Shown in pieces: positions 10,093 to 42,115 of a DNA stretch of 64,000 nucleotides (the first letter of the stretch is position 1; each line of letters begins with the position of its first letter). The DNA is taken from NCBI GenBank assembly GCA_029953675.1, contig JAMWBK010000003.1:2790001-2854000 (forward strand). The letters are read 5' to 3'. Source of the DNA: Rhodosorus marinus CCMP1338. Lineage: Eukaryota; Plantae; Rhodophyta. A program made the position numbers and the translations under genes. The notes under the pieces are model-generated. The model did not search any database. It was not told the origin of the DNA and was given only the letters and a program-made list of their open reading frames with translations.

Positions 10093-12325
10093 ATGGGTGG
10101 GGAAGTTGGTGTTAGGGTTGGAACTGGATTTGTTGGCCCAGTATGGAGTACGAAGCGGGTGGCCTCGGATCGGGACTCGCGAGCGTGCAGGAAGCCACGG
10201 ATGATGGCGCATGGCGGGGAGAAAAAGCATAGGACTCCCCTTTTGGATGGAGTCAAGCTTCCTCGGGACTTGAAAAAATTTAGCGTTTCCGAGCTGCATC
10301 AGTTGGCGACCGAGTTGCGATGGGATACAATTCAGTCTGTGGCTTCTACGGGTGGCCATCTTGGCTCGTCCCTAGGGGTCGTGGAGTTGACCGTTGCATT
10401 GCATTACGTATTTGACACTCCACAGGACAAGATCATCTGGGACGTTTCTCATCAATGTTACCCTCACAAGATTCTGACGGGAAGAAGGGATCAAATGCAC
10501 ACTTTGAGGAAGAGAGAAGGGCTTTCCGGCTTCACGAAAAGGGATGAGTCGAAATATGATCCGTTCGGAGCTGGGCACTCGTCAACATCGATTTCGGCCG
10601 CCCTTGGTATGGCGGTAGCGAACGATTTGGACAAGAAGAAAACCCACAACATTGCAGTGATAGGGGATGGCGCAATCACAGGAGGTATGGCCTATGAGGC
10701 GATGAACTCGGCCGGGTACCTTAGAAACCGGATGTTAGTAATTCTAAATGACAACGGACAAGTATCTCTTCCAACTGGGCATAACTCCGCCGGTGGTGTT
10801 CGTCCTTCCGGCGCACTTTCTGACTACACCGCGAGGCTGCTTTCATCAAGCAGATTTTTGAGCGTCCGAGGCATGGCGAAGTCAATGTCAACGCAGCTCC
10901 TTCCTGGAGGGCTCCAGGAACTGGCAAAGCAGGTGGACACGTTTACAAGGGGGATGATCAACCATGGGGGAACCCTCTTCGAGGAGCTCGGATTCTACTA
11001 CATCGGTCCTGTAGACGGGCACAATATCGAAAGTCTTGTAAGAGTCCTTGAGAATATTAAGAATCTCGACGGAGACAAGCCAATCTTTTTGCACGTGAAA
11101 ACGGAGAAGGGAAGGGGCTACAGTTTTGCGGAGTCAGCATTTGACAAGTACCATGGGGTCGCGAAATTTGACGTCGAAAGCGGAAAGCAACAGAAGAGTT
11201 CCTCGAACACTCCCGCGTACACAAGCGTGTTCTCGGATGCTCTCATCCGAATGGCTGAACACGATTGCAAGGTTGTCGGAATCACCGCTGCTATGCCAGG
11301 TGGAACTGGAATGGGCAAGTTCGGTGACAGGTATCCTGAGCGGATGTTTGACGTTGGTATCGCTGAACAGCACGCTGTGACTTTTGCCGCTGGCCTAGCG
11401 TGCGAAGGATACAAGCCGTACTGTGCGATATACTCGACTTTCCTGCAGCGCGGATACGACCAGTTGGTTCATGACGTCGCTCTACAGAAGCTCCCAGTTC
11501 GATTCGTGTTGGACAGGGCTGGCTTAGTCGGCAACGATGGTGCTACCCACCAGGGAGCTTATGATCTAAGCTACCTGGGATGTATACCGGGACTGGTTAT
11601 CATGGCGCCGAGTGATGAGGTTGAGATGAAGAGAATGTTGACCACCATGAACGACATTGATGATCAACCGTCTGTTATTCGCTTCCCGAGAGGCTGTGCT
11701 TACGGAGAGGAAGCGCTTGCTGAAACTTTGGGATACCCCATGAATCAAACAGATGAACCTGGAAAGCTTCCAATCGGCAAGGGAAGAATTTTGCGGAGTA
11801 CTAAAGGGAAGCCAGATAAGGCGAGAGTATGTCTCTTCTCGATCGGTACGAGACTTGTTGATTCGGTCAAGGCTGCAAAAGTTCTGGAGGTAAGTAGCAC
11901 TTTTGAAGACGTCCATGTACGCCCTTCATCGTCATTGACAAGCTCTTCATTGCCGTCTTGAACAGGAGCAAGGGTTCTCTGTGACAGTCGCTGACGCTCG
12001 CTATATGAAGCCTCTGGACACCGAACTCGCCGGGCGCCTTGCCACAACCCACGACGTGATGATCACAGTAGAGGAGGGCTCGATAGGCGGCTTTTCATCG
12101 CACGTACTCCACTTCCTAACTTTGGAGGGGCTGATGGACTCTGGCAAGCTCAAGTTCCGGTCGATGGTGATCCCCGACGTGTACATCGAACATGCCACTC
12201 AGACTGAGCAACTTGAACAGGCGGGGCTGAACTCCTCGCAGATCGCGGCAACGGCTTTGAAAGTGGGTGCTAAGCAGGGAGAGTTGCAAACACCGGCGGA
12301 GATGGAGAGGATTGTTGCAATGTAA
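10093..12325 (+). CDS. DXS: 1-deoxy-D-xylulose-5-phosphate synthase, plastid-targeted
   Basis: Motifs [53 protein letters not shown] and DARYMKPLD. One intron at 11890-11965 (GTAAGT...AACAG) restores the frame. The N-terminal extension resembles a transit peptide. Confidence 0.97.
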
Positions 12326-15432: not shown

Positions 15433-17930
15433 ATGGAGGGTTCTGATGATAACAAGAACTTTGGCGACGCTCTGAGGGATGCGAAGAATGCATTGGCAAA
15501 GGTGGGATACGATGGTCTTGGATTGCATCACAACAAGGATGTGAAAGGTAGGTTTTGGTCTTCTTCTTTCCCTCTACCCCTTCTCGAGTCATCTGGTTTG
15601 TGCTTTTTGTGTTGCCTTTTTCAGCATTTCCTGAAGATCGATGCTCATTTCCGGTTCTTCCTTTTGTTTCAGGATCGATTCATGGACTCGGGCCAGTTCC
15701 AGTGGCTACCGCTCTGAATCAACTTAAAAGTGCAGTTTCTACATTGGAGAAAGTAGCTGAGAACAAGGATGTGTGGACTGATAGATTCTACTATGAGCTA
15801 GGAAAGCTGAAAGGTACTCTAACGAAAGAAGACACAGCCCACCGCTTAGCATGAACCCACGTCCGAACGAAAAACTGACATAAGCGCGCAAAAAAAAAAC
15901 AACGGCAGGTGAACTCTCGCAACAGAGCAAACGTGTTGAAGACATGAAGAAAGCCCTCACCAACGCGGCGGAAACATGCGCAAGAGAAGACCCATTCGCT
16001 CCTCCTGGTTTCCGGTTATCCCGTAAGGTGCGCCTGGCTGCTGAAAAGGCGGGGCTGCAATGGGCAGAGGAAGCATCTCCAGATTCCGTATCAGTTCCAG
16101 AACTATCGATCTACGGAAAAACATTCCTTGTCGGTATTCAGTAAGCCAACTCCCACATCACCATACGCGGGGGGCTAGTACTGCTTTCTCCGTCAAAGCG
16201 AGAAACGCTTTGGTCCACGCCGGAAAACGCTTTTCATAGTTGCGGACACGGTATCTGAGCAGCCAGAGGCTTGCGGTTTCAACCACGATGAGCGGAGTTA
16301 TTCCCTGCTCGTCGTTCTCCTCAGACTTTGTCTTTTACGGACCTCTGAGCGGAAACGATTTGTCTTTGTCCTTGTCATGCAGTTTCCAACCGGATAGTAA
16401 TGCGACCGACGTCAATTTCGTCAACGTTGTTGGAGACAAGGAAGATCCCGCAGATATGGCTGTGAACCAGGATATTGAGAGGCTCTTGGAGGAAGAACTC
16501 ATCGATGAGGTATGGAACAGACAACTGCTTATTCGCGGGATTTTGTTGTTCCCAGACTCGGTTGTTGTTAGGTCACCGGTCGCGAAGTTGCGATGGATCT
16601 CTTCCGCGTCCCGTTTGGCGATGCACACCCGGGGCTTGTCTTGAGAATCGGGAGGTTAGATCGTCCGACTGAAAATGAATATCGCCTTTTTTTGCTGCTT
16701 TCGTCGGCTTCAGTTTGAACGAGTCTTGAGGACCCTGTTGGAGCTGGAATCGCTGGAGACCAAGCTCGGAGAATTCAAGCTGAAGGATTCTTTGACAGGG
16801 TTTGAGGAAGACCTGCTCGCATTTCAAAAGAGCGAAGAAAACGCGGGTGCGAGTGTGGTGCAGAGAATCTGTTTGGGCCACGGGTTGATAAGGAGAACAG
16901 CAGCTGGGCTTCAGATTAAATACCATGCGACTGCTGCCGGGATGGTAAAATTGAACAAGCAGGCGTCGTTGGAAGGCCCTGAGGTACCTCTTGAGCCCGA
17001 TGAAACGTATTCCGCTGATGTTGGAGTGGATGACGCGACGCCGCCCAAGGCTATAGCGGTGGGTTCGCAGGGAGTTGGTACTGCGCCGAGCGTAGTTCCC
17101 AGCCTGCCGTTGGAGTTCACCTTTGCGTCTGAGTCGACACAGACCGTGGCCGCAATCTATGTCCTTCATCTCAATCCCCCAGTAGTCTGCTCAAGTTCCT
17201 TAGCCACATCTTTGGCGTCTCTTTCAACTCCATACTCAAACGAGGCGGGAGTCCCATGGACTGAGAAAGGAACCGGACTTCAGATGCTGCTGAGTCCTGA
17301 GGCGTTTGACCAAGGCGGAGTGGATGTGCTCAGAAATTGCAGTCTAAGGGACGGAAGCGTTGTTGCCTTCTCCCACCCAGGTAATCGGTATTTGGGTGCG
17401 ACTGTCTCAAGAATCCCAGTTGTTCATCCGCGCGACCTCAACGTCGCGTTCAGACTGCTTCGACAACAAGCTACATTCAACGAACTGTTCACCTCATGCT
17501 GTCAACAAGACATTGATTCTGCAGATTTGTCAAAAGAAGCCAGAACCGTGTTGTCTGCTGAGGTACGTTATTAAACCACTCACGACACATCTATGAGCCG
17601 GTCATCGTTATTGGGTGCTTCCAACACTGAAACCGTGGTTACTCTGCTCATCTTGTACCCTTTCTCGGCTTTCGCTTGACCTAGGTGGTTCTTTCCGACC
17701 CGCCGTCTTTTCTTCAAGTGGATATCTCGAATAAAAACGAGGAGACTGCTGTACTGACAATTGGTATATCTATTGCAGAGGGAGGGCAGATTCATGTTAC
17801 TCTGCAAGGGCAAAACCCATGGTGCTCGGACGCGACAGCTACAAAGTTGCTTCGAGCCTCTAGGAATGTCCCACTTTCTATCTACTACATGAGAAAGGCA
17901 GAACAGGGGTCTGGTGCAATGGCAACTTAA
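15433..17930 (+). CDS. MED1: Mediator subunit MED1 (spliced)
   Basis: Med1-domain-like motifs YGKTFLV, IPVVHPRDLNVAFRLLRQQATFNELFTSC and C-terminal CSDATATKLLRASRNVPLSIYYMRK. Several exon ORFs are separated by GT-AG introns. Confidence 0.8.
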
Positions 17931-17955: not shown

Positions 17956-20764
17956 TCACCACGTGACTTTCTTCAAGAGTCTTGTCGCCCATTGTGGTGG
18001 ACCTCCCTCAAGCCCTTTGAAAGTGTAACCGAAACGGAAGGCGACCTTCAACGGCCACAAGAGTATTCTGGCAAGCCACAATGGAACCGTACGTGTTAAG
18101 CACGATACACTTTGTGGTTTGAGACAGTCATCAATTGAGAAAAGGGGATGATTCAGCAGCGACGAAGTGACAACCCAAACGCGTTAGAGCACAAGAACGA
18201 GGGGATAGTGTCAAACAACGCTCACCGTATGCCGTCCACATACAGGACATCGTTGAGGGTATGAGGATGGTATACCCCCATCCTCCTCTCTCTCCTGATG
18301 CCGGTGACGACCTTGTCACTATACAGCGCATCACCAACGGACAGCTCCTCGGCCAATATGAGCTTTTCGGATTGCCCGACTAGGTAGTGTGATGATGCTA
18401 CTGAAAGAGATTCGCCTGATTCAAAGCGAATTATCATATAAAGGGAACTGTCCTTTTGCATCCGTCGTGTGAACAAAAACACGGGGGTGAACTCTGTTTC
18501 CGATGAGCGCACACGATCCCCGATATCCAGGAGGTCCATAGGCTTAAAAGATCCATCTGCGCCAGTGAAAATACGCACAAAATGGTACTCAGAGATACTC
18601 TGAAGACAACCCCAGGAAGATCTGGACGCTACCTTCAAGCTCGACGGTGGAAGAACCTGGAAAGCAAACTTCTTCTGGAGCTGGCGGTTGTTCCCCGGCC
18701 GTCCTGGTAAGCGCGAGGAAAAAAGGACATACATCAGCCCTTTAACGTCTGCGGACGGCGATGGATCTGAATGGAATCGTTCCGTACCCGCTGTGTCTGA
18801 TAGCTATCAGTTCGTTGGACGAATCTGAGGTGTACAAAAGAGTACCATCCTTGAGGAAGATACCATCAACTGGCCTCACTTCCCGGGTTTCTAGGAAGTC
18901 GTGAATCAGTTCGTAGTCATCGCTGCTTGGCATTCCGGTTGAACTGCGCATGACACAAGGATTGGATCTGTTAACGAGGATATCCTAGTCGTCGCCCGAG
19001 CCGGGTGACGGTGACATACGAGTCAAACTTCACTCTGGCAACAGCATATCCAGACGGTGGGTCTCGATTCCAGCTGCCATGGCTGAACACGATCATGTCG
19101 CCCTCACCGTCCGATGGGAAGGGAAACTCCATATCATCTCCGGACGGGGGCTGGAACGCAAAACCTAATGGAGCCCAATGAGCCGGCAAGCAATACCTGT
19201 TTACGTTTGCACGACAAGCTAGGTTCAGTGATTTGCTGAAATGAGAATATCAAGAGCACAGGGAAATTCTCCCCGGGCTGCTAAACCTTCTGGCTACTGA
19301 AACGCCCGGAACTCCAGATAAGCGCGTCACCCAACGCAAGATGGTACGGATCTAAACTGAGACAAGAAGAAACTCACGCTGGGCGTTGGACGAGTTCTTC
19401 ATTTCTGCAATCCTCGTCTGTAAAACTCGCCTCTGGGAAGGTCTTGGGCCATGCCCACTGCGTCGTCTTCCCCTGCCCAAAGCCGTTGTCAAGAATTCCC
19501 TCAGAGAAGCAGTAGGGATATCCGTAAAATTTGCCAGCGCCGGTGAATTGGTTGATTTCCTCGCAAGGGTTGTCGTTATGAATATCTCCTCCAATGTCAT
19601 CCCGAACAAGCTGGTCAGCTGCATTCTCAACCCTGAAAACCGGTCCGAGGGAACCCATTGGAGTCAAGCAAACCAATGTCAGAAAACAATGGTAGACAAA
19701 AATTCTCCCTACGCTTTAGGACTTTGATGTTTTGAATTCCATGTTCTAAGGAGCTGATCAAACACCTCGACGGGTTCATGTTCGACAGAACGACGACGCA
19801 GATGCGTTGACATTTCTTAAGCCCTCTGGCTGCGACATGAGGCGTTTGATCATGTTCTCTTCACGTTCAAGAAGGCAGGACCTGCGCTTGGTTCGGCCAC
19901 CTACCCCCATAAGACGCCTCGTGAGTCAAATCCTAGGCCAACTTCGTTCCGAAGACCAGAGGCGAACAATTCAAGTGTGTCCCAGTCGTTGTTGCCGGCT
20001 TCGATGGCATCCTGCGAAACTCGCTTCAAGTTGCTTCGAACTGGAGTCGGATCCACATTTCCTAACGATCCGGTAGCTATGTACAGTCTGCCCCTGAGGC
20101 GCGGAGAGGAGGACGAGCGAGGGCAGACTTTAGAAGTGGTCTTCGTCATATTCCTTGGCTTGTCTTTCTTCGCAGCTGGCTTACTGGTCGTCTAGAGCAA
20201 GGCTCCTCGTGAAATGTCCTCCCCGTGGAATGTTCTTGACAATCACGTGCTGGGATTCGGCCATTTTCTCCTGTGAGTTGTAGATGTATCTGTACACTGT
20301 GTCCTCAGTTGAGACGAACGCATACGGACCTCCGGAAGCAACGGCTCTCTCGCTCTCGTCGATCAAGACTGCATGGTTAAGGCCCAGGCCTTGTATCAAA
20401 ACCACCTTTTTTACATCCTGAGCGGCCAACCATATAGTCAGTAGGGAAAGGATGCCAAGCCATCTGCTGGATACGAAAATACTTCGGAGACTACCTCAAC
20501 GGACTGATCTGAGTTGGGAGGGGGATAGAGTAGCACCAGTGATCCAGTGCCCTTCTCGATGACCAAAATATTTCCTTCAGAATCCTGCACCAAGGACCTC
20601 GCGCTCTCTACCTCCGCGTACTTGAAAGCGCAGTATCCCTCCCGAATCGCCCCGCCGGCGATTGCAAATCGATGTCCGCACGCACTGTCAACTTCATGAC
20701 AGTAAACAAGCGAGGAAGAACAGAGAACAACCAGACCATAAAGAATTAACTGCGTTCCAAACAT
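17956..20764 (-). CDS. Secreted PQQ-dependent sugar dehydrogenase (sorbosone DH/AA12-like beta-propeller) fused to a C-terminal Hedgehog-type Hint domain
   Basis: Nine-exon model: 20764-20495, 20417-20185, 20093-19905, 19632-19378, 19196-19020, 18943-18788, 18703-18633, 18556-18226, 18109-17956 (1836 nt, 611 aa, all GT-AG). It has a signal peptide MFGTQLILYGLVVLCSSSLVYC and propeller motifs SGLRNEVG, GVENAADQL, DNPCEE, YGYPYC, PAHWAPLG, SHGSWNRDPPSGY and RPVD. The Hint domain starts CFPGSSTVELEDGSFKPMDLLDIGDRV and contains SSHYL and VYHPHTLNDVLYVDG. Confidence 0.88.
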
Positions 20765-28138: not shown

Positions 28139-30192
28139 ATGAAAACGAATAGGGAAAAAGGTGGCGATGATGGTGGTGAGGAAGAGGAATCGACTGATCA
28201 AAAGGCCCCCGTGGCGAAGAAGTTGGTCGTTGGGAAACGGGTGACCACGTTCGCCAGGGCGCTTGCGTCGAGTCGGAAGAAGGTTGGTTCGCAAAACTGT
28301 CTATTATGACGTCCCTGGGATTGTAGATTAGCGGGGAGAAATTTGACTAAATCTGCAATCCCCCGGCTTCGAGAGGCTTTTCTATGTATCTGAAAACGCT
28401 CGACCATGCGTATTCGTCCGATTCTGATGCGCAGGTGAGAGATCTCGCGTTGGAGGCGCTGCAAGTCTGGCTGGAGAAACACGATGACTTGAGCGATGTT
28501 GAAATGCAGAAGTTGTGGAAAGCTCTGTTCTACTATATTTGGATGGCGGACAAGGAGAAGGAAATCGAAAAGGTAAATTGCTGCACTCTCTCCAGATACG
28601 AATGGTAAAGCTGAGACTACCGAATCACGGACGCGCGTGACAGGTCATCGCCAGGGTTGTTGGGCTATCCGATATAGCAGGAATGCCGTTTATTCGGGGA
28701 TTGTTTAAGTGCATGGTCAGAGAATGGCATGGAATCGATCGACTGCGAATTGATAAGTACTATTCACTGATCAACGAAGCTCTAGACAAGTCCCTTGAGA
28801 TCATCCTCAGCTCTGGTTCCAAGGAGCAGTTGGCCAAGACCTTGTCGGAATTCGTTACGATTCTGGACGAGGAGGTGAGAGAATATCTCTGCTCAGTGAG
28901 CTATCAAACTAAAACCCGCGAAAAAGCAACTTACTTAGCAATAACTTCTTCTCTGGTCCATATTCCAGGTCTTTTCGAAGTCCGGAAAGGAAGGCAAAGG
29001 GCTTACTCTGCACCTGCTTGAGAAATGGACGGACAACATCCTGAAACCACTTCTAGATCGCCGGCCAAAGTCTACGACGGAAATCCTCGCTGTCATGATT
29101 GATCCGTTGTTCGATCTTCTGAGCTCAACGGATGTGTCGAGTCCGAAGAAGGCATCTCAGGTCCTTGACTCCGTTCTTAACAGTTGGATCGAAGCCGGAG
29201 CAGGGGACGCGGAAACAGGTTTGTCCTTCTGAACGAACGAAGAGGTCCACGATCGACCTGGTTGCAAAGAGCTGAGATAACCCATGTGAATTCCCCAACT
29301 TTTCACCCGCTGGCAGCGATCAGACCTCCCCGAGCGGTCCTTTTGTTTGCCGTGAGGACCAAGCTGTTCAACATGGCATCGGACAAGGATGCTCCTGAAA
29401 ATAATCGAGAAGTGCTGTATGCCCTTTGGACCAAGAGCAAACGCTCTTGTGATCTGCTGGCTCCAGAAGAAACCAGTAAGTTGATGAAGTGGAAATAGTT
29501 CAATTGAGCATTACCTCCGTCGAGAGACGGGAATGTATCCAACCTCTTGCTGAGAAATATTCGCGTCCGTGTTTCCCAACCAGAAACGCACCCAACCAGA
29601 CCGCTTCCAGACCCATCCTCGAAGGCATCACAGAAGAAAAGAAAACTGGAGGCCAAGAAAAAGAGAAAGCAACAACGGCAAAAGAACAGTACTCAACAAC
29701 GGAAGGGCATAGAGAAAGAAGGTAGGCAAATGAGAAAGGTTCCCTAGCACGAGCGTCGAGGCTGGATACAATGACGTTAAGTTGCGGCGAAATTTCCTCC
29801 AAACCATGTTCCTTCCATAAACACGGATGAAGCCAACGTGCACGCGAAAACTGAGTCCTCGTCCGATCGATCTTCGACCCAGCAAGGTGTCCGCAGTAAA
29901 TCTCATGAAACTGAGAAGGAAGGTAGGCAGCTACCCAAACCATGCTTCCTACGGTCGCGCTCTTTTTGGACACTTCCTCTATTCGAACACTCTCTTGCGT
30001 GAAGAATCCTCATCGTCTTTGTTGTCTGGGCGAAACGTAGATGAATCAAACGGTGCTGAGAAAGGAAGACGATCTCCCGATGGACCCCCGAAAGAGAGGA
30101 AAACGGTGCGGTTCTCCTTAGAGGACAATCAGGTCCATATCTTACCGAAGACCAAACGAAAACGGAAGGTCAATAGATCGCTCTTCTTCTAG
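28139..30192 (+). CDS. RRP1: Nucleolar rRNA processing protein RRP1/NOP52 (spliced)
   Basis: FARALASSRKK is joined across an intron to VRDLALEALQVWLE, followed by LWKALFYYIWMADK and REWHGIDRLRIDKYYSLI. The C-terminus is K/R-rich and contains KTVRFSLEDNQV. Confidence 0.9.
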
Positions 30193-30826: not shown

Positions 30827-32403
30827 CTATTCACCAGAACCGTCGGCCAAAGGCGCAGGGAAAGTAGTTCCTACAACATTCGACGCTCTCCCGACTCCCG
30901 GGGACATTAAAGTAGGTGAAGCCAGTAAACCACCAGGAGACATGAATGGTGACGGTGAGAAAACTCCCAAACCTCTTCCAGGCGATATCGGGGGCAATCC
31001 GGTCGGCGTCTGCATGTTCCAACCGGAGAAGGCACCTAATGCACTACCAGTCAACCCACCCCCGCCGCCAGGCATTCCAGGCGTGGTCCCTGTACCATAG
31101 CCAGGATGAAACGGACTTGGCACCCCAGTGACAACCATTGGAGACATTGCGGTGAATCTATCGGAAACCTTCGCCTTGCTCGGGTTGCTTCGCTTAACGG
31201 CGGCTTCGGCGAAACGAATTTCCTTGCGTTTCGCTGAGCCCACATCCGCTCGATCGGCATGTTTTGAATCCTCATCATCAACATAAAAGTCGCCGAGATC
31301 AAGCTCCAGCGATCTGATATGTTCGTTCAGGTCGGCACCACTCATGAGCGCTTGCTGTTCCTTCTCGTCCATCTGGTCCAGTTGCGAAACTGTCGGCAGT
31401 GTCTGCGCACAGAGCAAAAAGATGGAGGGTATAAGGTTAGACAAAGCTGACAAGGACCTACATCGGCGCCGCAATGTACTGCATCCGAACAACCGCTTAC
31501 CGCGCTTGCATCTCTCGTAAGATCAGCAAAGTTGACTTGCTTGGCTAGAAGCTCCCTCTTCACGTCGTTTTGGTCCACGGCTGGGCGAGTACCATTGGTG
31601 CTCCAGTCGCTCTCTACAGGCATCCCCATCCTCTGCGTTGGTTCCTCAACCGATCCCATGGACTCCATGAAGCGGTACGCGCTCTCATTATGTTGATCAT
31701 TCGAACACCCTTGATCCCCTCTATGAACGGCTCCACCAGCCGCGTATCCCGGACCCGCAGTTTGCTTCCTCTCTCCCGACAGGAATCTCGCAAGGTCCTG
31801 GGCTTGACTTGCCTGCTGTTGTTTGGTTGCCTCGTCCTTCCCCATCCAAGGTTGGGGTTTTCCTGCGGGGGGGTAAGCTTGCGGTCGTCCTTGAACGGCA
31901 GGCGCCGTCTGTTGTTGTGTGTTGCCTATGATTTGATCGAAAGAATACTGCTGATTCTGAGGCATCCTTTGTGCCTGCATTCCATCGTTGCGCATGTTCA
32001 TCGCTCCCTGACCCTGTTGGTACGCCGTCCGTACGGAAGGACTGTTCAAGTACGCGAGGATGTTTGAATACGACGCCGGATTTGCAGGTTCACTGCTAAC
32101 ACTTGCAGCGCCACCGTTAGTTGTCTGGGTCCTACTAGCCGGAGCATCTCCTCCGCTGATTTGCTGTTGGCTCGCTAGACCCTTATGCGCAGCAAGATGG
32201 GAGATCCACGATGACCTCCACATGAACGTCTTACCGCAATCGGCATAGTTGCACTTGAAAGGTTTCTCCCCGGTATGCATTCGAATGTGCGCCTTCAGAT
32301 TATAGTTTTTCCCAAAGTCCTTGTTGCACCCCTCGAAATGACAAGCATATCGCTTTTTCCCTTTGCGAGGGGCAACGGCCTGCTTGCTGATCCTCCCCTC
32401 CAT
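30827..32403 (-). CDS. C2H2 zinc-finger transcription factor (two fingers)
   Basis: YACHFEGCNKDFGKNYNLKAHIRMHTGEKPFKCNYADCGKTFMWRSSWISHLAAH, a Q-rich middle, an intron at 31403-31500 (GTAAGC...GCAG) and an S/P/G-rich tail. An additional upstream exon cannot be excluded. Confidence 0.88.
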
Positions 32404-34656
32404 TTCCTTCCAAGAAAACAACTCCTCGACCCGCCTCTTAAATGAGTCCCTCCCACCCACCTACCTAATCCACGTACAACACGGAGAAATCTTCTCTCCT
32501 CTTCCCCCTTCACAATCCACTCCCACCTTCTGCACTTCTTCTCGACTTAACTGTACCTGAATTTGACGATTCCAGGGCAACCATTGCTCATATGCCCATC
32601 ACGCTACCCTTAAAATACCAACACTTTTGTGTTCGTCACTCCCAGCTCCCTCAATCCCAGCCGGGCAAAACTGTCCACAGCAACCCAACGATGAAACAAA
32701 CACTGATACTCGATAAAACACCGAATACTAACAAAACTCTCTACCTTAAAACATGTCCAAAATCCCTAAACCACTCCAAAAAAACCCCACTCCGCCCCCC
32801 CCCTCCCGCCCACCTTTCCTCAATACCACAACCTCTTAACAACCAAACATCTACAGCGCCCACCTCCTATGACTACACAACTTTTTATCCAAAAAATACA
32901 AAACAACCAACACCACCATCTCCGGCCCCGGCCCGCCCCCTCTCCGGTTCTGGTTTTTTTTTTTTCACTCAACACAGACGCTCTCCTCGGCAGATCTCCA
33001 TCGAGCACAAAACGCTTTCCTTAAGTTAACCCTCTTTCGAATGAAACCCACCACTCCTAATCATCCCCCAAGACCCTTTTACTTCAAAACCTTCAAGACT
33101 GACCGTTCTCTCACGTGCATCTCTCTAGCGAAAGCCAAAGCCCACTCTACACTTCATGAAACCCCCAAAACGTACAAAACTCCCGCAACACCTTCCGCCT
33201 TTCTTCCCCCCCTTCCATCACATAACTCCTTTCCAACAAGAAAAACCAAAAAAAACCATTGACTTCTTTTATTCTCCCCAGCCCCCCTCCCGCCCGCCCA
33301 CCCCCCCCTCCTCTTTGACTCTCCACCTTCTAATCCTAAGAAAACCATTTCTTCAGATTATCAACCCCCTTTCTTAAAAAACAACAAAACTAAACCGCAA
33401 GTACAAACTATGTACTATATAGTTCTTAGTTTTGCTCAATATACTTAAAATTAGAATCTAATTATTTTATAGTTTATTGTGGTAGGAAATACCTACCCCT
33501 TCTGTTTTTTTAAATCATATATTATTAATAATATAGAAAAGAAAGGGGTAGGGCAAATTGGCATGCGTTTAAGATAAAGTCTTTTATATTGCCCCGAAAC
33601 GGACAGAATATGATCGAATTGAAATATTGTTATTACGAAGCCCATTTAGATTTTTATACCGGGGGTTTGGGAGCGGGAAATATGGGGAATGCAGACTTTT
33701 TTGCTTTAGAGTTATGGACAGCTGTTTATGGAGTGCTAAAATTACCCCCTTGGTTTTTTAAAGAATATTCTAGGTGGACAAGGAGCAAAAAGAACATTGT
33801 GCTTTTTCGTAGTAAGAAAAATTAAGAAAAAGTCAATCCGTTTTTTCTTCTTCCGTCATCTCACCTTATTTTTTTTCTTTAAGATATAATCTACATCGGT
33901 TTCCCGGGAAAAAGGCGGTAAGAAAAAGAAAATCCGGGAATTTCTGGTACGAACAAAATACCCACGCTCTCCCCTTCCCTCGTAACTCCCTTCGGCTTTC
34001 CCGCCCCCCCCCCTGATTAATTTCTTTGACTGAGCTATAAGAGAGGTATAATTTCAAGAAGATTACGTACTCGTTCAAGAAATATTAGATAAAGACTTTT
34101 TTGACCGTTAAGGACAAGAGTTGGAATGGGGTAGATTTTTTATTTGTTGTTCGTTGAGGTTGAAGGGAGAAGGGAACGGGGGGTTACTACTAACTTCATT
34201 GTATAAGTCACGGGTTCTATTTTTAACAGAAAAAGGAAGCTTCTCATGTATATCTTCAAGATTTCAGCTAAAACAGGAAAACGAGCAAACGGAAAATGTG
34301 CTCACGAAAAGGGTCAACCCCCTTCTATGGGAAAATATTTTGTACAAGAAAATAACCGTCCACTATCGAATGCAGCGTATGTTTCTGGGGTTGTCTATCA
34401 GGTCATCCTCTATAACACAACAACACGTACCCCCCTCTATCTACTATGGCTATTATTTGAAACATTAAGAATTCATTTTAATAGGTTTAAAAAAGGGGTA
34501 TCCAATCGTAAACGCGGTAACGTCATCTACAGGGGTATGAAGAGAAGAAAATATATGGTCTAGACAGAACGTAGCATCATTTCTATCGTATATTTGTAGT
34601 GTTTTATTATTGTTTTCTTGTAGTACTGCGTTTTTCCTGGGGCTTCAAGGAACCTA

Positions 34657-41039: not shown

Positions 41040-42115
41040 CATCCACCCCAGCGATGCCGTAGTTCGCGGAGAAGATGTTTCATATAGAAAACAAAGACCG
41101 ATCTCAGTAGCATCTACATCTTTATGTATATAAAGCATGTCTCTGTATTCGTCCTGGTCATGCATAGTACGTCATCCATAACTTCGCCGTGGACGGCAGC
41201 ACCTCACTCCGCTTGGACGACGACCGTGGTTGGTGGGGAAGGTGTAGAAGCGATGCTTCGTATAGAAAACAAAGACAGGCCTAAGTAGTATCTACAACTC
41301 TATGCATCTAAAGCATGTCAATGTATTCGTCCTGGTCATACGTAGTCCGTAACTTCGCTGTGGATGGCAGCACCTCACTTCGCTCGGACGACGACCGTGC
41401 TTGGTGGGGAAGGTGTAGAAGCGATGCTTCATATAGAAAACAAAGACAGATATAAGAATAGCTACACCTATGCCTATATAAAGCATGTCAATTTTTTCTT
41501 CCCGGTCATAGTACGTCATCCATAACTTCGCTGTGTATGGCAGCCCCTCACTTCGCGTGGAGACGACCGAAGTTGGTGGGGAAGGTGTAGAAGCAATGCT
41601 TCATATAGAAAACAAAGACAGATCTAAGTAATATCTACACCTATTCCTATATAAAGAATGTCAAGTTTTTCTTCCTGGTCATAGTATGTCATCCACAGCT
41701 TGGATGGACTCACTTCCCTTGGCGACGACCGAAGTTGGTGGGGAAGGTGTAGAAGCAATGCTTCATATAGAAAACAAAGACAGACCTAAGTAATATTTAC
41801 ACCTATGCCTATATAAAGCATGTCAATTTTTCCTTCCTGGTCATAGTACGTCATTCATAACTTCGCTGTGGATGGCAGCCCATCACTTCGCTTGCCGACG
41901 ACCGACGTTGGTGGGGAAGGTGTAGAAGCAATGCTTCATATAGAAAACAAAGATAGCTCTAAGTAATATCTACATATAAACATATGTAAAGCAGGTCAAT
42001 TTTATTTTCGTCCTGGTCATAGTACGTCGTCCATAACTTCGCTGCGGATAGCTTAGCCCATCACGTTCTAGTTGGACGACGACCGTAGTTCGTTGTGAAG
42101 GTGGGTAGGCCAATC
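41040..42115. repeat. Tandem array, ~171-173-bp unit, about 6 clear copies plus degenerate copies back to about 40650
   Basis: GGTGTAGAAG anchors at 41241, 41412, 41584, 41746 and 41919 (spacings 171, 172, 162, 173), plus a degenerate copy at 42100. CATATAGAAAACAAAGAC and CTGGTCATAGTACGTC recur in each unit. Confidence 0.93.

Follow-up and report, generated by a model that had tools for sequence, protein, structure and literature searches.

Locus and gene structure

The window analysed here is a stretch of 64,000 nucleotides (contig JAMWBK010000003.1, positions 2,790,001 to 2,854,000), and its minus strand carries a gene, termed AA12-Hog, for a precursor in which a predicted sugar dehydrogenase of the AA12 type, dependent on pyrroloquinoline quinone (PQQ) and Ca2+, is joined to a Hint domain of the type found in Hedgehog (Hh) proteins (Table 1). 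The best database match of the encoded protein is the NCBI entry "hypothetical protein NDN08_003588 [Rhodosorus marinus]" (P0001, 597 residues, 98% identity); hence, the window is taken as nuclear DNA of the unicellular red alga R. marinus. This public entry has automatic names only, the UniRef name being "Hint domain-containing protein".

When the reading frames of the minus strand were read again between positions 17700 and 21100, an independent model was obtained that is identical to the earlier one of nine exons and 611 amino acids. The coding sequence comprises 1836 nucleotides and all eight introns are of the GT..AG type, with lengths of 76–272 nucleotides. The motifs quoted in the original prediction were all found, namely GLRN (residues 214–217), DNPCEE (251–256), YGYPYC (267–272) and HGSWNR (355–360), as were the linker TAGEQPPAPEEV (residues 428–439), the Cys440 codon at 18666-18664, the tail VPLWLARILLWPLKVAFRFG and the unspliced stop at 18744-18742, and its coordinates proved correct. 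The NCBI model differs from the 611-residue model at the last intron alone, where its acceptor lies at 18068/18067 instead of 18110/18109, i.e. 42 nucleotides downstream; the NCBI acceptor (intron 18067-18225) removes 14 amino acids, VSCLTRTVPLWLA, and with them Cys564 of motif J. The 611-residue form, and not the 597-residue one, is supported by the peptides P0292, P0002 and P0285, which derive from transcripts.

A tblastn search of the window found this gene only, with no second copy or paralogue. Bacterial contamination was considered as the source of the gene and ruled out by the eight spliceosomal introns and the eukaryotic neighbouring genes.

Table 1 Features of the AA12-Hog gene and of its surroundings, in window positions
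Feature	Position	Strand	Remarks
Whole gene, AA12-Hog precursor	17956..20764	-	ATG 20764-20762, TGA 17958-17956; 9 exons, 611 residues; transcripts L003, P0292, P0002, P0285
Exons 1-9	20764-20495, 20417-20185, 20093-19905, 19632-19378, 19196-19020, 18943-18788, 18703-18633, 18556-18226, 18109-17956	-	
Predicted signal peptide	20699..20764	-	Residues 1-22, MFGTQLILYGLVVLCSSSLVYC; highest 19-residue Kyte-Doolittle window, 1.72
TrAA12-like six-bladed PQQ/Ca2+ sugar dehydrogenase domain (predicted)	18703..20632	-	Residues 45-427; exons 1-6 and first base of exon 7; introns inside span
Intron 6	18704..18787	-	84 nucleotides, GTACGG..CCAG; joins propeller to linker and Hint; stop 18744-18742 if retained
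Pro/Glu-rich linker TAGEQPPAPEEV	18667..18702	-	Residues 428-439; Val439 = predicted new C-terminus
Hedgehog-type Hint domain	18097..18666	-	Residues 440-565; exons 7-9; introns 7 and 8 inside span
Cys440 codon (TGC), putative Hint nucleophile	18664..18666	-	= Hh C258/C1; residue 1 of 1at0 and 6tyy
Arg481 codon (CGA) at Hedgehog general-base site	18465..18467	-	= fly D303/D46
Block-B motif A504-S-S-H507	18387..18398	-	= Hh T326-x-x-H329
Cys564 codon, motif-J VSC	18100..18102	-	= Hh C400/C143; aligned to 6td6; kept in 3 strains
Tail resembling the adduct or sterol recognition region (ARR/SRR)	17959..18096	-	Residues 566-611; helix 571-586 (WLARILLWPLKVAFRF), Gly/Pro loop, helix 600-608 (AlphaFold2)
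DXS gene	10093-12325	+	DXP_synthase_N 3.6e-107, Transket_pyr, Transketolase_C; short interruption near 11962-11980
Med1-like open reading frame	16675-17574	+	Pfam 6e-7
Nop52-like open reading frame	28683-29021	+	Pfam 3e-14

Evidence for the fusion in transcripts

Transcript data were available from two other strains of R. marinus, as a JGI contig (L003) and as MMETSP/EukProt peptides. The 2.4-kb contig L003 (about 90% nucleotide identity) behaves as the cDNA of a related strain; introns 1–6 are gone from it exactly at the exon borders of the model, and introns 7 and 8 are still present. The peptide P0292 (MMETSP0011, 574 residues) is spliced at all eight junctions and runs from residue 38 to the stop, and P0285 and P0002 are spliced at junctions 4–8 or more. 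These three peptides share the reading ...YVDGIRVSCFTSTVPLGLARILLWPLKV..., and intron 6, which separates the propeller from the linker and the Hint domain, was found to be removed in L003, P0292, P0285, P0002 and P0289.

Transcripts ending the propeller at the unspliced stop had been named in the original prediction as the finding that would speak against the fusion. Such an isoform exists, P0287, which retains intron 6, is 445 residues long and would encode a secreted protein with the AA12 domain only; yet spliced transcripts cross 18704-18787, and the fusion is real at the level of fully spliced mRNA. In the same assembly, other introns are retained as well, i.e. intron 3 (N-terminus of P0002), intron 5 (P0290, P0297) and intron 7 (P0289, P0121), and the open reading frame P0291 stops at the border of exon 4 and intron 4. 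Hence, the retention of intron 6 looks like a case of general incomplete splicing.

The dehydrogenase domain

The N-terminal part of the protein matches the Pfam family TrAA12 (PF22807) over residues 54–427 with E=2.3e-22 and 79.4 bits, the cut-off being 30.9. On searching the PDB sequences with phmmer, AA12 of Trichoderma reesei was found as the best match (6i1q, 6h7t, 6i1t; 2.3e-24), followed by the Coprinopsis cinerea enzyme CcPDH (6jt5; 1.6e-19). The same order was obtained by Foldseek with the propeller model: TrAA12 6h7t came first (E 9.4e-26, TMt 0.80), then CcPDH 6jt5 (TMt 0.77) and then bacterial soluble glucose dehydrogenases. The model was made by AlphaFold2 on an alignment of 91 sequences and has a mean predicted local distance difference test score (pLDDT) of 85; an earlier model on five sequences was poor in the propeller (54.7). 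In the later model, the propeller reaches a pLDDT of about 92–97 and matches the six-bladed fold of TrAA12 and CcPDH. The fungal AA12 enzymes named in the original prediction are the nearest relatives with a solved structure only (26–27% identity); by sequence, PF22807 proteins of protists and bacteria are closest.

Roles of single residues in TrAA12 were taken from the structure paper (PMC6881810), in which His153 is the catalytic residue, Arg220 and Asp221 form a dyad, the Ca2+ sites involve Glu259/Tyr276 and the Ser240 carbonyl/Asp242, and Arg57, His330 and His350 line a basic PQQ pocket. These were transferred through the phmmer alignment; with an offset of 27 between chain and precursor numbering, the letters expected are found at R57, H153, R220/D221, E238, N239, S240, D242, E259, Y276, H330 and H350. 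The equivalents in Rhodosorus are R56, H158 (as the catalytic base), R216/N217, E233, N234, A235 (a backbone ligand), D237, E256, Y267, H322 and H355. Among 91 homologues, R216 and H322 are invariant and the remaining mapped residues are at least 90% conserved, with the exception of A235 and E233. There is thus no sign of a dead enzyme in these residues and the propeller looks active; binding of PQQ and oxidation of sugars are predicted for it. We know of no eukaryote that synthesises PQQ. Fungi are not known to make the cofactor (PMC6881810) and, by this parallel, a need of the algal enzyme for external PQQ may reasonably be assumed.

The propeller model also matches the Hedgehog-interacting protein HHIP (PDB 3ho5/2wg4, E about 2e-7), as is expected of propellers of the GSDH type. 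HHIP binds Hedgehog in animals; that a relative of this fold is joined here to a Hedgehog-type processing domain is a curiosity and probably a coincidence.

The Hint domain and its active site

The C-terminal part matches the Pfam family Hint (PF01079) over residues 437–590 with E=1.4e-18 and 67.7 bits (cut-off 29.7), so that both domains of the protein lie well above the curated Pfam cut-offs. A sequence search of the PDB with the Hog part alone gave the C-terminal domain of fly Hedgehog (6tyy, 1at0) at 6e-5 to 1e-4, and Foldseek with the C-terminal part of the model placed 6tyy (E 2.3e-9, TMt 0.76) and 1at0 (E 8.9e-9, TMt 0.74) ahead of inteins (2e-6). The Hint domain was modelled with a pLDDT of about 90. 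No Pfam match was obtained for HH_signal, the N-terminal Hedge domain; the N-terminal part is TrAA12-like and the protein is therefore not a Hedgehog proper.

By its sequence, the Hint domain is of the cleaving (Hog) type and not of the splicing type. A reading as an intein was ruled out, since there is no C-extein, no His-Asn junction and no downstream domain, and motif J is followed by a helical tail of 46 residues. With these results, the identity proposed at the outset, a secreted AA12-like PQQ dehydrogenase with a Hedgehog-like Hint domain and an amphipathic tail, is upheld by profile, fold, residue and transcript data.

The residues of the Hint active site were assigned by alignment to fly Hh-C and to 17 other Hog sequences. 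The Cys440-Phe441 pair, i.e. the CF motif at the start of the domain, is invariant across all aligned Hogs. His507, the equivalent of H329 of Hh, is kept and also invariant, and the V-S-C564 of motif J aligns with A-S-C of Hh. At two positions the Rhodosorus protein stands apart. The general-base site is occupied by Arg in all three R. marinus strains and by His in the 16 other Hogs aligned, and the Thr of the TXXH motif is replaced by Ala504 in the three strains, the position being Ser or Thr in all other aligned Hogs.

The consequences of such changes have been described for fly Hh, in which H329A is dead and T326A greatly lowers cleavage driven by dithiothreitol (DTT) as well as by cholesterol (PMC9163320). 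Replacement of the general base (D303A/N/R/E) leads to loss of cholesterol transfer, with DTT cleavage becoming more efficient, and D303H keeps the activity; the D303R variant still forms the thioester (PMC9163320). The equivalent of Cys564, C143, carries the branched thioester intermediate and is needed for Hh autoprocessing (PMC12054796). By analogy, formation of a thioester would be possible in the Rhodosorus domain, though perhaps slow, and activation of a sterol hydroxyl in the manner of Hedgehog would not be expected. Lipid anchoring is therefore doubtful, given Arg481 at the general base together with Ala504. The original claim of a self-processing and possibly lipid-anchored protein is upheld in part only: Cys440, His507 and Cys564 are kept, the general base and the TXXH Thr are changed, and the idea of a lipid anchor is weakened by this residue-level evidence.

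Signal peptide, linker, tail and selection

The N-terminal segment is the sole stretch of transmembrane grade in the protein and was modelled as a helix at residues 4–16. It is conserved in P0287 of the other strain (MFRTNLFICGLVILCSSSWVYC), and its hydropathy fits a signal peptide. Between the two domains, the linker differs among strains and appears disordered, with a pLDDT below 50 at residues 430–442. The first helix of the tail is amphipathic, with a hydrophobic moment of up to 0.52, and its Kyte-Doolittle value of 1.22 is below transmembrane grade; no transmembrane segment was found in the tail by hydropathy. The tail shares the motif WLA..P.R with the other Hog tails aligned.

In comparison with strain L003, the ratio of nonsynonymous to synonymous substitution rates (dN/dS) is 0.23 for the AA12 domain and 0.28 for the Hint domain. 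Both values indicate purifying selection, and from its value the Hint domain is judged not to be decaying.

Distribution and origin of the fusion

When 1.84 billion cluster representatives were searched exhaustively with a profile, AA12-like proteins turned up in thousands, but both domains were matched in no more than three clusters, namely P0124, P0049 and that of Rhodosorus. With clustering at 90%, nine fusion clusters are obtained outside Rhodosorus (P0049, P0124, P0079, P0056, P0298, P0007, P0299, P0300 and P0301), all of them metagenomic. The Hog region by itself, used as the query of a word-indexed search, gave three matches and no information on architecture. In the literature searched, no paper was found in which an AA12 or PQQ enzyme is connected with Hint or with Hedgehog autoprocessing, and none that is relevant to the genome of Rhodosorus marinus and Hint; the AA12-Hog pairing is thus rare and, within this scope, undescribed.

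P0049 is a single uninterrupted open reading frame of 683 residues on a 34-kb contig, which is eukaryotic as judged from its Myb and NOX-type ferric-reductase neighbours. Its AA12 domain is 55–60% identical to proteins of the diatoms Seminavis, Pseudo-nitzschia, Cylindrotheca, Nitzschia, Thalassiosira and Epithemia; the label "diatom-like" used here refers to this identity and to the eukaryotic neighbours, and to nothing more. In a neighbour-joining tree of AA12 domains, the metagenomic fusions fall inside a diatom clade without Rhodosorus, which was recovered in 70 of 100 bootstraps. Rhodosorus itself groups with the AA12-only proteins P0004 and P0006, both of which end right after the last blade. 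A single origin of all AA12-Hog fusions was rejected, the clade of all fusions being recovered in 0 of 100 bootstraps; hence, the fusion most likely arose at least twice, in the red alga and in diatom-like organisms.

In the Hog cassette of the diatom-like proteins, the general base is His and the TXXH motif carries Ser; the tail is longer, and a transmembrane segment lies at the C-terminus. With little change, this cassette also follows a multicopper oxidase of three domains (P0266), an M43 peptidase (P0246) and N-termini to which no family was assigned (P0251, P0256, P0257), and it is found in tandem (P0235). The locus L001 10001-12052 belongs to the same set of diatom-like metagenomic sequences. 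Such a distribution suggests that the Hog module is a C-terminal cassette shuffled among extracellular enzymes.

Proposed processing and alternative explanations

To the reading that the precursor cleaves itself and frees the dehydrogenase, without the sterol esterification of Hedgehog, we give a probability of roughly 0.55. According to this scheme, one nuclear gene would give a precursor made of a PQQ/Ca2+ dehydrogenase (about 46 kDa, pI 4.5) and a Hog module (19.6 kDa, pI 8.6), which would enter the secretory pathway. Cys440 would attack the carbonyl of Val439 in an N-to-S acyl shift assisted by His507, and the thioester so formed may pass its acyl group to Cys564. Water or a small or unusual nucleophile would then resolve the thioester, probably slowly; with Arg at the general base and Ala in TXXH, resolution without sterol esterification is what would be expected. 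The dehydrogenase would be released with the end ...PAPEEV and would need PQQ from outside the cell, while the Hog fragment would stay associated with membranes through its amphipathic helix, or be degraded. Cleavage is suggested by the retention of C440, H507 and C564, by the disordered linker and by the absence of a C-extein. The same architecture occurs as an uninterrupted open reading frame in diatom-like contigs, which argues that the pairing is functional elsewhere. On this basis, self-cleavage with release of the enzyme is plausible and lipid anchoring in the style of Hedgehog is less likely.

Several points weigh against this reading. Ala504 takes the place of a Thr whose replacement in fly Hh (T326A) greatly lowers both reactions, and Arg481 replaces the Asp or His base; Rhodosorus is the sole aligned lineage in which both changes are found. 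Directly ahead of the Cys there is a beta-branched residue (Val or Ile) in place of Gly. The tail has a dN/dS of 0.71 against L003, a value from very few sites that indicates weak constraint, and an mRNA that retains intron 6 and gives a protein with AA12 only does exist. Cleavage might thus be very slow or absent.

The alternative put forward in the original prediction is a true Hedgehog-like lipidation, by which the AA12 domain would be moved onto a sterol or lipid hydroxyl and anchored on the cell surface. Cholesterol-type sterols are common in red algae, and the Hog architecture, the SRR/ARR-like helix-loop-helix tail and its amphipathic first helix are in keeping with such a reaction, as is the presence of both Hh cysteines, including C564 as the counterpart of the branched-intermediate residue C143 (PMC12054796). 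It is nevertheless regarded as unlikely, with Arg481 in place of the base that activates the sterol hydroxyl: fly D303A/N/R/E lose cholesterolysis (PMC9163320), Asp and His alone are known to work at this site and all other aligned Hogs have His. Moreover, the tail is much shorter than the SRR of Hh and weakly constrained. Another reading is a Hint domain without catalytic activity. The protein would then stay an uncleaved fusion of 65 kDa, with the Hog fold and the amphipathic tail anchoring it to a membrane or to the wall or mediating interactions. In favour of this, substitutions are found at two of the four classical active-site positions (R481, A504), in this lineage only, T326A alone strongly impairs fly Hh (PMC9163320), and purifying selection fits a conserved non-catalytic role equally well. 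Against this stand Cys440, His507 and Cys564, which persist in three strains without obvious reason if the domain is dead, the thioester formation left to Hh by D303R (PMC9163320) and the disordered linker just before the Cys, which is typical of a cleavage site; a silent domain is, in our view, also improbable.

It is far less probable still that the fusion is an artefact of the gene model, i.e. an AA12 gene that ends at 18744-18742 and a separate Hog gene joined by a chance GT..AG pair, even if the isoform P0287 ends at that very stop and a stand-alone open reading frame from 18734 spans the Hint region. In-frame spliced transcripts across the junction come from independent assemblies and strains (P0292, P0285, P0002, P0289, L003), and they exclude this reading. 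In addition, intron 6 is not the only one retained, since isoforms with intron 3, 5 or 7 occur and the frame of P0291 ends where exon 4 meets intron 4. The Hint part lacks its own signal peptide and in-frame start, and other organisms encode the same fusion in single open reading frames. A broader idea is offered as speculation, with rather long odds: Hog modules might be an algal device, recruited repeatedly to tether extracellular redox enzymes covalently or to time their release (with AA12, multicopper oxidase, M43 peptidase and the galactose-oxidase-like kelch domain of Cyanidiales as cargoes), the Arg version of Rhodosorus, in which both catalytic cysteines are kept, working with another acceptor, e.g. 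an anionic lipid or the hydroxyl of a wall polysaccharide. If true, this would be a non-animal system of protein lipidation or wall grafting with a cargo enzyme that is easily assayed.

Neighbouring genes and other features of the window

The genes for 1-deoxy-D-xylulose-5-phosphate synthase (DXS) and for the Med1-like and Nop52-like products are ordinary nuclear neighbours. A functional gene cluster was ruled out, as none of the three has a link to PQQ, sterols or secretion.

At positions 775-1385, two tandem arrays with a unit of 15 bp lie side by side (7.6 and 32 copies, about 90% matches), and the minus strand reads there as a Pro/Gln-rich repeat (PPQQQ...); these repeats may be a low-complexity coding region. 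The first 2 kb of the window have a GC content of 57% and an AT skew of -0.44. At 41075-42103 there is a tandem repeat with a unit of 173 bp (six copies, 83% matches), which is AT-rich and looks non-coding. Strong strand asymmetry was observed at 32250-33500, a C-rich and G-poor region (e.g. 107 C vs 20 G in 250 nucleotides), and the GC skew is -0.35 over 32–34 kb.

Significance

The adduct and the role of non-animal Hogs have been open questions since the catalogue of 2008, and their cargo is mostly unrecognisable. In Rhodosorus, the fold and the cofactor of the cargo are known and a simple colorimetric assay exists for it, which opens cleavage, adduct and localisation to direct tests. The separate origins of AA12-Hog, together with the sister fusions in which the Hog cassette follows a multicopper oxidase or a peptidase, suggest that algae have a general manner of dealing with extracellular enzymes. 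PQQ-dependent AA12-like enzymes are extended to red algae by this gene, presumably with reliance on bacterial PQQ, which bears on the exchange between alga and bacterium. Furthermore, a natural Arg/Ala variant of the active site that is under purifying selection provides a useful test of the current mechanism of Hedgehog autoprocessing.

Comparison with known systems

In Hh-C of Drosophila and vertebrates (1AT0, 6TYY), the Hint fold (TMt 0.74–0.76), the equivalents of Cys1, His72 and Cys143 and the helix-loop-helix after the S-C-x loop are shared with the Rhodosorus protein. The latter differs in that there is no Hedge domain, Arg481 stands in for D46 and Ala504 for T69, the residue at position -1 is Val or Ile and not Gly, and the tail has 46 residues as compared with about 60–100 in the SRR of Hh.

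Fungal AA12 enzymes (TrAA12 6H7T/6I1T; CcPDH 6JT5) resemble the N-terminal part in the six-bladed propeller (TMt 0.77–0.80), the catalytic His, the Arg/Asx dyad, both Ca sites and the basic PQQ pocket, and the hosts on both sides are eukaryotes that are not expected to make PQQ. The identity to the fungal enzymes is 22–27%, whereas the closest relatives, PF22807 proteins of protists and bacteria, reach 40–47%. A Hog module is appended in Rhodosorus, where fungi have an AA8 cytochrome b or CBM1.

Hog proteins were reported by Buerglin in 2008 from many protists and from the red algae Chondrus, Porphyra, Griffithsia and Gracilaria (PMC2362128). These share with Rhodosorus a secreted N-terminal "cargo", the CF... 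start, a His of the TXXH type, motif J and an ARR tail. The N-termini of the red-algal Hogs in that catalogue are without a recognisable domain and the Cys of motif J is changed to Ser, Thr or Asp (PMC2362128); in Rhodosorus, the cargo is an identifiable enzyme, the motif-J Cys is kept, and the general base and the Thr of TXXH are changed.

Expansions of Hint domains are described in diatom genome papers. The diatom-like AA12-Hogs (P0049, P0007, P0056, P0079, P0124, P0298-P0301) have the AA12 and Hog parts in the same order and the WLA..P.R motif of the tail in common with Rhodosorus. They have Ser for the Cys of motif J, a tail insert of about 19 residues and a C-terminal transmembrane segment, and their AA12 domain nests with the AA12-only proteins of diatoms.

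The closest published architecture was described for Cyanidiales, whose genes encode a kelch domain, with an annotation as galactose oxidase, followed by a linker of Thr, Pro and Ala and by Hint (Cho et al. 2023; PMC9812998). This too is a red-algal beta-propeller that is annotated as a carbohydrate oxidase and connected to a Hedgehog-type Hint domain through a Pro-rich linker. As judged from the published description, the propeller of the Cyanidiales is kelch/AA5-like and that of Rhodosorus GSDH/AA12-like; and the Cyanidiales genes are subtelomeric and multi-copy, whereas the Rhodosorus gene is single-copy in the window and has housekeeping neighbours.

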